From Tubulanus polymorphus (lineage: Eukaryota; Animalia; Nemertea), in NCBI RefSeq assembly GCF_964204645.1, contig NC_134032.1:1116001-1180000 (forward strand): DNA of 64,000 bases, read 5' to 3'. The position numbers and the translations under genes were made by a program. Below are positions 39,391 through 63,982 of the stretch, one piece after another. The number at the start of each line of letters is the position of its first letter. Positions within the stretch are counted from its first letter, which is position 1. Below the pieces are notes generated by a model. The model saw only the letters and a list, made by a program, of their open reading frames with translations, was not told the origin of the DNA and ran no database searches.

Positions 39391-39440
39391 CTTCCTCTTT
39401 ACTTCCTTATACTAACACTCTTCAACTCCCTCAGGTAGGT
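39391..39440 (+). other. Candidate recursive splice site (junction 39434/39435)
   Basis: Perfect TACTAAC branch sequence at 39410-39416, then ACTCTTCAACTCCCTCAG|GTAGGT, after a long AG-free upstream zone. Confidence 0.5.
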
Positions 39441-40483
39441 CTATTATTAAACCGTAGATATTTGCGATGATCTAATTTTAAAGATTGGTTGTGGATGATA
39501 GAAGTATTAATATTCACCAGTCTCAGCATCCCCTCTGGACATCACCGTTACTAATGTCTTCGGTCTCTCTCTCTCTCTCGTTGAAGGTCATATTTTGATT
39601 AACTGGCAATCTCGATTCGTTCAAGTACACGGATTTAATTCATTCGCGCACGAATAAAGGATATGATAGCACTTTCAGTTGTATTCGTGATATTTTTCTA
39701 TTAATTCAAACACGAATTTGCGCTGAAGCGTCAAAACGACAGATTTGTAGCGTAAGGAAATGTGTTGATTTTAATGAAGAAATATTTTTTTTTGAATTAG
39801 TAGTTTTAATAAGCCGAACCGATTCATTGAAAGATTTTGATGTCATAGGATTTATTCTGTTCGTGAGACGCCGAGCTAAACTCGTTATATATACTATGTA
39901 CCAAGTGAAACGTTGTTTGATTGTAACAAGCTTCAGTGTCATTGATTTCCGTTTCCGGGATGTTGAATATTGAAACGATGTATTAATCGTTCATATCGTA
40001 TTGCCGCTTGTAAATATTTATTAACTTATAAATCGCTAATATCTAGGCCACGACAGAGTCTATGATCGCAGCGAGGTTTCTATATAAGTTCACCAGGGGG
40101 CGTTAAACATTAAAATGATATCGTATTTCGATTCGATTCCAGGATGTTCGCTCCCCTCATTAGTAACCTATAAAAGTCCATATTGGATTCTAGATAATTG
40201 AACTAGTCAATAAACACTTAACAACGTTGTTATCAAAGCAGTACAACATTAAGATCCTAGAAAGGGGTTAGGGCGCACAGGGATGTGATAGAAAGGGGGT
40301 TAGGGCGCACAGACATGTGATAGAAAGGGGGGATGGGGGTCAGGGCGCACAAGGATCCGATAGTATGTTTGCAGTAAGTTTAGATGATACTTATACCTGC
40401 GATATGGCGCATCTGGACCGTTCCCATATCACCGATACGGTAACCATAACAACAACTGCCACTCATAAAAAACGAATCGGGTT

Positions 40484-40725
40484 TCTCTCTCTCTCTCTCT
40501 CTCTCTCTCTCTCTCTCTCTCTCTCTCTCTCTCTCTCTCTCTCTCTCTCTCTCTCTCTCTCTCTCTCTCTCTCTCTCTCTCTCTCTCTCTCTCTCTCTCT
40601 CTCTCTCTCCCTCCCTCCCTCCCTCCCTCCCTCCCTCCCTCCCTCCCTCCCTCCCTCCCTCCCTCCCTCCCTCCCTCCCTCCCTCCCCCCTCCCTCCCTC
40701 CCTCCCTCCCTCTCTCTCTCTCTCT
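40484..40725. repeat. (CT)n then (CCCT)n
   Basis: Direct reading. Confidence 0.97.
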
Positions 40726-40854
40726 ACCTACCTTACACGATTTTGAAAATGACGGTGACAAAAATGTCACCGTCGCCCACCTCGCCGTCTGCTCGTATTG
40801 TAGAACATGGCTGCTTTCCAAATGCTGAAATGACGTCATCTTTCTTTCTATTGA

Positions 40855-41222
40855 TTTTTTGACGCCGTAAAAACCGTTACAATAATGCTTATACACATTG
40901 ATACCTCAGGCGTTATTTAAGGGTTTCTGTGTGAGTCGATGCGCACGACGTCATCAATATCGGCGTTTCAAAATAACAATTACAATTGTAAATTCTGGCG
41001 TCAGTTTTGTAATTAGATATATTTTATAACTCTTATTAAATATATCTTTTTTCATTTATGATAAATTTTGATAATTATTTTTGAGAGGCTGTGTACTACG
41101 TCATCAAATCAAGGGGGCTAGACTGGTTGCCGGTAAATTCGATTCAATTGTCAAACTACTTTACTGATCGTAATTGATATACGATTTATATTATACGATT
41201 TATTGTCGACGATATTAAGCAA
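40855..41222 (+). repeat. Interspersed repeat, second copy at about 49452-49910
   Basis: Collinear similarity from TTTTTGACGCCGTAAAAACC to TATTGTCGA..TATTAAGCA. Confidence 0.75.
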
Positions 41223-42436
41223 ATAATGTTTTATTTTTTTAAGGCGTCAATAAACTTTTCAAGTTCGTTTTTCTTGCTAAAGATCCTTGCCTCCGGGAAA
41301 TAACCCCAACCCAAAACCCGTGATAATGAAAGACTCCTGAAATTATCAAATTTGGTATATATTCGATGGATTTGTAAGTGCGGGCCTCACACCACAGAAA
41401 AATATCAAATTTTATAAAAACGCATGCATGCCATTGGATGAGTTGGCGTTATCCAATGAGTTGGCGTTATCCTACTTTTAACTAATGATTTTAACTTTTT
41501 TCTCTTTATGTTTAAATTTATATTGTAAAGCCAATGAGCATATTTTATATGGATTTTAGGCTCAATAAATTATTATTATTATTATTATTATTATTATTAT
41601 TATTATTATTATTATTATTATTATTATTATTATTATCATTATTATTATTATTATTATTAATATTATTATTATTAGGGTTTTCTGACTTTCGTCGAAAACC
41701 CTCTTGAAATTCTGTTGATTATTATTATTATTATATATTTTCCGCCGATTTCGTCAAATGAAATTCATCTTCATTCAGATTCGGCAACTGACAGCTTCGA
41801 AACGAAATGTATAAATTGATACTGTAATAACGGTCTCTCTGAACCAACAGATTGTCTGAATGTACTTTCCATCCTATTTGAAACTTAAAATTACTTATTA
41901 GGTTACTGTAAATAAAGAATTGAATTGAATTGTTAGACAACAAGCACCGGCGAAATAACAGTTTGTGACGTCATTTAGTAAGTAAATAAAGGAGGGCTCC
42001 GAGAATTTCCAAATCACGGGGGACTATACTGGGGTTAGACCATTCAACCAAAAAGAGGATTGCTCCGATAATATCCAAATCATCTCATTTTATTTTTTCC
42101 ATCGAATACCCGGTAATTAATTTTTCCTTTCGATCACATGCATCCAGAGAACCCGTTATCGCTGCTTTGCAGCTATATTTATTATTATTATTATTATGAT
42201 TATTATTATTATTATTATTATTATTATTATTATTATTATTATTATTATTATTATTATTATTATTATTATTATTATTATTATTATCCAAAATTGGCTGATA
42301 CGCAGATTTCCCAATTGCACAGATTGTGAAATGCTTGTCATTTTAAGAATTAAATTTCTGTCAAACTTTGCGTGTAATTATCTACACGTATAGTGACGTC
42401 GTAGTCGTGATCTCTTTATCTTATGATTGTAGTTAG

Positions 42437-62077: not shown

Positions 62078-63300
62078 GAGAGAGAGAGAGAGAGAGAGAG
62101 AGAGAGAGAGAGAGAGAGAGAGAGAGAGGAGGGAGGGAGGGAGGGAGGGAGGGAGGGAGGGAGGGAGGGAGGGAGGGAGGGAGGGAGGGAGGGAGGGAGG
62201 GAGGGAGGGAGGGAGGGAGGGAGGGAGGGAGGGAGGGAGGGAGGGAGGGAGGGAGGGAGGGAGGGAGGGAGGGAGGGAGGGAGGGAGGGAGGGAGGGAGG
62301 GAGGGAGGGAGGGAGGGAGGGGAGGGAGGGAGGGAGGGAGGGAGGGGAGGGAGGGAGGGAGGGAGGGAGGGAGGGAGGGAGGGAGGGAGGGAGGGAGGGA
62401 GGGAGGGAGGGAGGGAGGGAGGGAGGGAGGGAGGGAGGGAGGGAGGGAGGGAGGGAGGGAGGGAGGGAGGGAGGGAGGGAGGGAGGGAGGGAGGGAGGGA
62501 GGAGGGAGGGAGGGAGGGAGGGAGGGAGGGAGGGAGGGAGGGAGGGAGGGAGGAAGGGGAGGGAGGGAGGGAAGGAAGGAAGGGAGGGAGGGAGGGAGGG
62601 AGGGAGGGAGGGAGGGAGGGAGGGAGGGAGGGAGGGAGGGAGGGAGGGAGGGAGGGAGGGAGAGAGGGAGGGAGGGAGGGAGGGAGGGAGGGAGGGAGGG
62701 AGGGAGGGAGGAGGGAGGGAGGGAGGGAGGGAGGGAGGGAGGGAGGAGGGAGAGAGGGAGAGAGGGAGAGAGGGAGAGAGGGAGAGAGGGAGAGAGGGAG
62801 AGAGGGAGAGAGGGAGAGAGGGAGAGAGGGAGAGAGGGAGAGAGGGAGAGAGGGAGAGAGGGAGAGAGGGAGAGAGGGAGAGAGGGAGAGAGGGAGAGAG
62901 GGAGAGAGGTGGGAGAGAGGGAGAGAGGGAGAGAGGGAGAGAGGGAGAGAGGAGAGGAGAGAGGGAGAGAGAGAGGAGAGAGAGAGAGAGAGAGAGAGAG
63001 AGAGGAGAGAGAGAGAGAGAGAGAGAGGAGAGAGAGGAGAGAGAGAGAGAGAAGAGAGAGAGAGAGAGAGAGAGAGAGAGAGGGAGAGGAGAGAGAGAGA
63101 GAGAGAGGAGAGAGAGAGAGAGAGAGCCAGGAGGAGAGAGAGAGAGAGGGAGCCAAGAGAGAGAGAGGCTGAGAGGGAGCCAGGAGAGAGAGAGGGAGAG
63201 GAAGAGAGAGAGAGGGAGAGAAAGGGAATTAGGGAAAGAGGGAGAGAGAGAGGGAGCCAGGACGAGAGGGAGAGAGGAGAGAGAGGAGAGAGTGAAGAGG
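62078..63300. repeat. 1.2-kb polypurine tract (GA)n/(GGGA)n/(GGGAGAGA)n
   Basis: Direct reading. Confidence 0.97.
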
Positions 63301-63703
63301 ATAGTGAGAACTAAACTGGCAAAACTACGTTCACTTTCAATAAGGTTTGGTCAGGTTTTACATGGAGAATATCTAAAAGGGGGCGCTGCTGGTTCGAGGC
63401 TGCAGCACCCCCTCCAAACCCTCTTCCCATCAGTATTATCCCTAGTATAGCTATTGGTTTTATTCGCCGTGATATTATTTACTCAATAAACGCGCGACCG
63501 GATATTCGACATGATCTCTCATCCGCCGTCCATTTCCGACATTTGTCATCGTCTGGGTGCTTTCAGTCGGAACCACCCGACGTTATACACACGGGCACTA
63601 TATTCGCAATAGGACGTAACCGTGTCACGCCACGCAGCGCCATCTACAGGCAATATTAGCGTCACCTTTCTTCCGGGAAGTATTTTGCCTGTTCCATTCG
63701 AGC

Positions 63704-63860
63704 AGGCGCAGTGGCCGAGTGGTTTAAGCCGCCGGTTACTGGTTTCGTTAAATTAGGGTTTTTGGTTTCGAATCCTGGTGGCGACACATTTTCTTGGTCG
63801 AAGGTTCCCCACTGGGAAAAAGAAACATCGAACCCACTAATAACGTGGCGCTCGAATCGT
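63704..63860 (+). mobile_element. tRNA-derived SINE, same family as 7501
   Basis: TGGCCGAGTGG A box, GTTTCGAATCC B box, shared CACATTTTCTTGGTCGAA and GGGAAAAAGAAACATCGAACCC. Confidence 0.8.
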
Positions 63861-63936
63861 CGATTTTTTTTTTTAATCCCGTGTAATCAACAGGTGTTCA
63901 CCCGGGCGAAGCTAATAATATGAAATTCTCATTAAG

Positions 63937-63982
63937 TTGTTTTATTTAATCCTTTCTTTATTTTGTCTCGTTGCAGGTAAGC
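63937..63982 (+). other. Candidate recursive splice site (junction 63976/63977)
   Basis: TTGTTTTATTTAATCCTTTCTTTATTTTGTCTCGTTGCAG|GTAAGC; 38-nt AG-free tract with a TTAAT branch-like motif. Reads G-K-R-F-T-stop in the channel frame, so it is not exon 2. Confidence 0.62.

Follow-up and report, generated by a model that had tools for sequence, protein, structure and literature searches.

Candidate recursive splice sites in the long intron of a K2P potassium channel gene of the ribbon worm Tubulanus polymorphus

A K2P channel gene with two first exons and a giant intron

The stretch of DNA analysed here, called the window below, covers 64,000 nucleotides (nt) of the + strand of the nemertean Tubulanus polymorphus (contig C8, positions 1,116,001-1,180,000; the assembly holds 268 Mb in 77 contigs). 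The window gene encodes a TASK/sup-9-like two-pore (K2P) potassium channel, and in its giant intron we observed three sense-strand sites at which a strong splice acceptor is joined directly to a donor (39434|39435, 42510|42511, and 63976|63977). These are treated below as candidate recursive splice sites, or ratchet points. The first coding exon 1a (5341..5623, + strand) is an open reading frame (ORF) that runs from ATG to ...ATCACAACTATAG|GTAGGG, and the alternative first coding exon 1b (28156..28438, + strand) starts with ATG and ends ...ATCACAACTATAG|GTAAAT. The two exons share 76% nucleotide identity and 73% amino acid identity, no acceptor was found upstream of either, and both terminate in the same ATCACAACTATAG|GT, as the initial annotation of this DNA had pointed out. 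RefSeq carries two isoforms only, the first exon being their difference: X2 (P0001, with a 100% identical protein) opens with the translation of exon 1a, X1 (P0121) opens with that of exon 1b, and both finish with the translation of a single large last exon. This common last coding exon (exon 2, + strand) starts at L004:5809, 5.8 kb past the window end, and is preceded by TTTTTATTTTCATGTACAATTGCAG|GT. The host intron measures 64.2 kb when counted from exon 1a, or 41.4 kb when exon 1b is the start, and it interrupts a codon of the selectivity filter (TIG|YG). The gene model was verified exon by exon; the nearest non-self protein matches are 72-78% identical.

Two observations concern the first exons of this gene and its relatives. 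A perfect tandem repeat, (GCAACTACAG) x 3.8, is found at 5268-5305, separated by 36 nt from the ATG of exon 1a downstream of it, presumably within the 5' untranslated region or the promoter. On the - strand of contig C1 (5059300-5093662, loci L008-L011) there is a K2P paralog with three alternative first exons, each encoding M1-P1 and ending ...TIG|GT, which lie 12, 26.5, and 33.5 kb upstream of a common exon whose acceptor is likewise followed by GT. Since this multiple-first-exon design resembles that of the window gene, the arrangement looks like a habit of the family.

Anatomy of the three acceptor-donor sites

Candidate ratchet point 1 (39391..39440, + strand) reads CTCCCTCAG|GTAGGT, with the CAG followed at once by the donor. 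It includes a perfect match to the TACTAAC branch point at 39410-39416, approximately 20 nt from the AG, which sits in a pyrimidine-rich, AG-free stretch of 44 nt; the AG-free zone of this site was scored at 76 nt. Candidate ratchet point 2 (42470..42516, + strand) is the best of the three, with TTCTTGTATTTTCAG|GTAAGT (in longer context TTCCTTTCCGTTCTTGTATTTTCAG|GTAAGT), 17 pyrimidines out of 20, an AG-free zone of 72 nt, and CAG|GTAAGT at the junction. Candidate ratchet point 3 (63940..63982, + strand) reads TCTCGTTGCAG|GTAAGC (in longer context CCTTTCTTTATTTTGTCTCGTTGCAG|GTAAGC) and combines 16 pyrimidines out of 20 with an AG-free zone of 38 nt and a TTGCAG|GTAAGC junction. All three were found exactly as the initial annotation had read them (39434, 42510, and 63976). 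The full (Y)nNCAG|GTRAGT-like consensus is present at site 2, and sites 1 (GTAGGT) and 3 (GTAAGC) are each off at one donor position. The same annotation had noticed two AGGTAAG words on the + strand, and these are indeed the only ones in the window (42509 and 63975), with none on the - strand. It had also held that no site continues the channel frame and that each runs into a stop within 9 codons; read-through in the channel frame ends after 7, 8, and 5 codons at sites 1, 2, and 3, respectively. Sites 1 and 2 are positioned at 53-57% of the intron counted from exon 1a, near its midpoint.

Each site is single copy in the genome, and the three are mutually unrelated apart from the motif. An origin from dispersed repeats, which had been named as a possible objection, was rejected because all three are single copy and none is repeat-borne. 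The idea that the sites are duplicates of the exon 2 acceptor was also rejected, as no similarity extends past the motif. Repeats do occur in the neighbourhood: one of the short dispersed kind is found approximately 125 nt upstream of site 3, which is itself single copy, and a 164-nt unit occurs twice (98% identical) at 39030-39359; its end is separated by 30 nt from the site 1 pyrimidine tract, and site 1 is outside the repeat.

A GTAAGT donor follows site 2 at +70 nt (42581) and site 3 at +210 nt (L004:187). The former would close a putative 70-nt cryptic recursive-splicing exon (RS-exon; 42511-42580, + strand) that ends GTC|GTAAGT (donor 42581-42586), is out of frame, and has a stop after 8 codons. 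The latter would close a putative 210-nt RS-exon or poison exon (63977 to L004:186, + strand) that ends CCG|GTAAGT (L004:187-192) and has an in-frame stop after 5 codons. Among other acceptor-like sites in a sample of about 180, six have a GTAAGT within 260 nt; at this baseline the chance probability that two of the three sites have such a downstream donor is approximately 0.003. At the sequence level, joining of the sites to the ...ATAG exon ends would give TAG|GTAGGT, TAG|GTAAGT, and TAG|GTAAGC, respectively. With donor strength taken as a simple match count to CAG|GTAAGT over nine positions, the rebuilt donor exceeds the downstream donor at site 1 (7/9 vs. 5/9) and at site 2 (8/9 vs. 6/9), where the downstream donor is the weaker one in its exon-side letters. 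The rebuilt donors equal or exceed in strength the native donors of the two first exons, TAG|GTAGGG and TAG|GTAAAT. GTAAGT, GTAAGC, and GTAGGT are all native donors of the same intron in K2P paralogs of this genome, and the native acceptors of these paralogs likewise carry long pyrimidine tracts.

Local excess, genome-wide counts, and alternative readings

The local frequency of such sites was scored with strict criteria, namely 15 or more pyrimidines out of 20, an AG-free zone of 30 nt or longer, and a donor with G at +5 that agrees with GTAAGT at five or six of its six positions. In 84 kb around the gene exactly three sites were found on the + strand and zero on the - strand; an equal frequency of the motif on the antisense strand, which would have spoken against the annotation, is not seen in this region. 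Markov simulations of the intron (orders 1, 3, and 5) predict 0.04-0.09 sites per strand, and a count of three was never reached in the 300 runs made at each order; the simulated rate is in line with the background of about 0.1 per 100 kb published for the complement strand (Shepard et al., 2009; PMC2773006, Table 2). Another 170 kb of T. polymorphus DNA, in which four paralogous K2P long introns at the homologous position are included, contains zero strict sites on either strand, and the whole control strand of approximately 444 kb contains zero. Such sites are likewise absent from the orthologous introns of Haliotis and Ostrea described below. Since the strict thresholds were chosen after the sites had been seen, the 1444 AGGT sites found in 508 kb of strand were all ranked by three continuous scores. 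Site 2 ranks first on all three, and sites 1 and 3 rank between second and seventh. In 183 kb of long introns of the K2P family with known orientation, the top tail of the scores holds 8 sense sites vs. 1 antisense site. We consider it confirmed that the observation is real and locally unusual.

Two further items came out of these scans. A site in the presumed 37-kb intron of another K2P paralog (C2:19567104, + strand, locus L019) reads TTTCTGAAG|GTAAGTGT on the sense strand; it has an AG-free zone of 75 nt, an A at -3, and 14 pyrimidines out of 20, and it ranks second on one of the three continuous scores. A strand asymmetry of GTAAG words in a 104-kb region (111 vs. 57) was set aside, as its source is a tandem repeat upstream of the gene and not the intron.

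Besides the post hoc thresholds, several results weigh against recursive use of the sites. The genome contains approximately 1870 CAGGTAAGT words in total, which is not above the reversed control. No fly-like genome-wide excess of a pyrimidine tract followed by CAGGTAAGT is seen: in counts made without annotation of introns, Y6-N-CAGGTAAGT occurs 25 times vs. 28 for R6 (reversed-pattern controls, 42 and 34). When the first 100 of 935 CAGGTAAGT matches listed were read by hand, about seven had a pyrimidine tract vs. 2-3.5 expected, and thus any excess among the matches listed is at most approximately twofold. There are 29 distinct Y10...CAGGTAAGT sites, and about half of them belong to one dispersed repeat family with a common ...CCCTGATTTCCAGGTAAGT. 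In view of these counts, recursive splicing does not appear to be a general habit of this genome and, if present in the worm, would be limited to a handful of introns. The paralogous K2P introns of 29-37 kb have no strict site, and the orthologs in two Haliotis species, with introns of 59 kb each, and in Ostrea edulis, with an intron of 21 kb, yielded none either. The best-scoring AG|GT sites in these Haliotis and Ostrea introns have poor donors, and the orthologous intron of Pecten is short. The lack of sites in distant mollusc introns indicates that there is no deep conservation and is uninformative about conservation within Tubulanus. At the level of the single sites, the closest good donor downstream of site 1 is merely a GTAAGG at +318, and at site 3 the rebuilt donor (7/9) loses to the downstream CCG|GTAAGT (8/9), and this site may therefore rather resemble a poison exon that can be included.

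The genome-wide counts brought up two sets of sites outside the window. The dispersed repeat family bears a ready-made ...CTTTTCCCTGATTTCCAG|GTAAGT site (for example at C3:10027959, C4:6161826, and C7:16128608). Among the matches read by hand there is a pair of pyrimidine-tract CAG|GTAAGT sites on the same strand 19 kb apart (C1:27109012 and C1:27128380, both +), and this pair at 27.109/27.128 Mb may mark a second intron with a ratchet-like series of sites.

The simplest alternative is chance, i.e., that in a long, AT-rich, and microsatellite-rich intron some pyrimidine-rich, AG-poor stretches happen to meet GT[AG][AG]G words and were noticed in a genome-wide reading for oddities. The missing genome-wide excess fits this explanation, and so does the finding that about 2.5% of all positions already satisfy the acceptor-side criteria. 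Moderate scores in the same 183 kb of K2P introns show no strand bias (66:64 at S>=2 and 37:41 at S>=3). With approximately 0.07 chance sites on each 64-kb strand, about 0.5 same-strand chance triplets are to be expected somewhere in a genome of 268 Mb, and therefore the local statistics alone are not decisive. A chance triplet, however, must also share one intron and the sense strand, acquire two downstream GTAAGT donors (the probability of approximately 0.003 given above), and place a perfect TACTAAC at branch-point distance, and the roughly 444 kb of control strand yielded no strict site. The single intron, the sense strand, the two RS-exon donors, and the TACTAAC lower the chance probability, by no rigorously quantifiable amount. 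On balance we regard chance as rather unlikely, though the most probable of the alternatives. Less probable still is that sites 2 and 3 open ordinary cryptic or poison cassette exons of 70 and 210 nt, whose occasional inclusion would bring in a premature stop and down-regulate the channel via nonsense-mediated decay, the GT behind the acceptor being incidental and never a donor. Each of the two exons does combine a good acceptor with a GTAAGT donor and soon runs into an in-frame stop, and the exon at site 3 has a donor of its own that outscores the rebuilt one. This explanation leaves the GTAAGT or GTAAGC at the start of each exon unaccounted for, as well as site 1 with no usable downstream donor, and RefSeq carries no isoform besides the two that differ in the first exon. 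Moreover, the same layout is the recursive one in flies and mammals (PMC8605326), so that the two explanations overlap.

It appears very improbable that the sites delimit exons of a different + strand transcript, unannotated and nested in the intron (e.g., a non-coding RNA). Any + strand transcript would bring + strand splice-like signals with it; the zero-length acceptor|donor arrangement is, however, unlike that of ordinary exons, and the contents of the intron give such a transcript no help. Long microsatellite arrays occupy 11787-12808, 30524-31073, 40484-40725, 54898-55513, 59403-59818, and 62080-63286 of the window; the intron arrays comprise (ATCCAGTC)n, (TTATTA)n, (TCTC)n, TCTCCC-type, and a (GAGG)n array with about 300 units; this last array is 1.2 kb long, and 700 nt lie between its end and site 3. 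Every intronic ORF of at least 180 amino acids coincides with one of the arrays, and Rfam and tRNA searches of the intron returned zero matches; no nested gene or structured RNA was found in the intron.

Recursive splicing is, in our view, the most economical explanation of the three sites, and an unproven one; its agreement with the present RS-exon model is closest at site 2. The explanation is partly supported. The anatomy of the sites, their restriction to the sense strand, the local excess, and the single copy status agree with what the initial annotation proposed, and the lack of a fly-like genome-wide excess and of sites in the paralog and mollusc introns does not. What the sequence shows is the anatomy, the strand restriction, the local excess, the single copy status, and the gene model; use of the candidate sites by the spliceosome is inferred. 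We consider the case evenly balanced for recursive use of at least one of them, in which at least site 2, and probably all three, would be intronic recursive splice sites of the K2P pre-mRNA, of the fly ratchet-point type with a cryptic RS-exon. The acceptor of a candidate site would be spliced to whichever first exon had been transcribed, with the downstream donor assisting through exon definition at sites 2 and 3. Since both first exons end ...ATAG, the join would recreate a 5' splice site at each candidate site, and this rebuilt 5' splice site would serve the next step, such that the intron of 41-64 kb would be removed in segments (11.0, 3.1, 21.5, and 5.8 kb, counted from exon 1b). Should the downstream donor be used instead, an exon of 70 or 210 nt with an early stop codon would be included. 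A convergence of both isoform paths at the first site, as the initial annotation envisaged, would be a trivial consequence of the geometry, provided that the sites are used, and is not independent evidence.

Comparison with known recursive splicing systems

To our knowledge, recursive splicing has been demonstrated experimentally in Drosophila and vertebrates only. Our search of the open full-text literature turned up no paper in which recursive splicing is connected with nemerteans, molluscs, annelids, or Spiralia generally; the closest work is a prediction from motif counts for sea urchin and several insects (PMC2773006). That fly-type recursive splicing with cryptic RS-exons operates in a nemertean, as the first case in Spiralia, is a tentative proposal that we place slightly short of an even balance. 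A verified ribbon-worm case, if true, would carry recursive splicing into the third great bilaterian branch, and the mechanism would then either date back to the bilaterian ancestor or evolve again with ease in single long introns, without a fly-like population of sites throughout the genome. The worm would also provide a contrast case, a compact genome with sites in isolated introns and not in most long ones. For the K2P channel itself, the sites would give its two alternative-promoter isoforms a shared exit, and failure at a site would put a premature stop into a background potassium channel.

Zero-nucleotide recursive sites with RS-exons are described from Drosophila (Hatton, 1998; Burnette, 2005; Duff, 2015; Joseph, 2018, as cited in PMC8605326; Pai, 2018, PMC6110457). 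For the fly ratchet points the cryptic RS-exon is now held to be obligatory; it is short, poorly conserved, and usually out of frame, and its donor loses to the rebuilt one (PMC8605326). Fly site density averages 2.2 per 100 kb vs. a background of approximately 0.1 (PMC2773006, Table 2), the excess of the motif on the sense strand is about 20-fold (PMC2773006), and most fly introns of more than 40 kb carry ratchet sites (PMC2773006; PMC6110457). The Tubulanus intron differs from this system in several respects. The worm belongs to Nemertea (Spiralia), and its genome shows no motif excess, whereas that of flies is about 20-fold (PMC2773006); two of the three worm donors are not GTAAGT; and the fly sites are ultraconserved and seen in nascent RNA, whereas those of the worm are candidates read from the DNA sequence. 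The likeness extends to the consensus (Y)nNCAG|GTAAGT, to its sense-strand position in an intron of more than 40 kb with several sites in it, to a 5' splice site that is rebuilt on joining of the upstream exon (here at the sequence level), to a short out-of-frame cryptic exon with its own donor downstream (here 70 nt, at site 2), and to the location of sites 1 and 2 close to the middle of the intron counted from exon 1a. The host intron length falls within the range of fly introns with ratchet points (PMC6110457), and the three sites in 64 kb amount to approximately 4.7 per 100 kb in the host intron, above the fly average of 2.2 (PMC2773006, Table 2).

Outside the flies, an enrichment of ratchet-point (RP) sites was predicted from motif counts for sea urchin, bee, beetle, and mosquito (Shepard et al., 2009; PMC2773006). 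That survey was genome-wide, used annotation, and included no spiralian, whereas here the signal is seen in a single intron and is absent from the whole-genome pattern counts. The two approaches agree in comparing sense with complement motif counts in long introns and in the background of about 0.1 per 100 kb (PMC2773006). Vertebrate RS-exons (Sibley, 2015; Blazquez, 2018, PMC6224609) are found mostly in neuronal genes, in introns of more than 100 kb; others are annotated exons that the exon junction complex keeps included. They resemble what is predicted for the worm in that the acceptor is recognised via a downstream donor, this donor competes with the rebuilt one, and inclusion leads to a premature stop. 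Site 3, with its stronger downstream donor and 210-nt exon, is closer to this vertebrate type than to the fly type.

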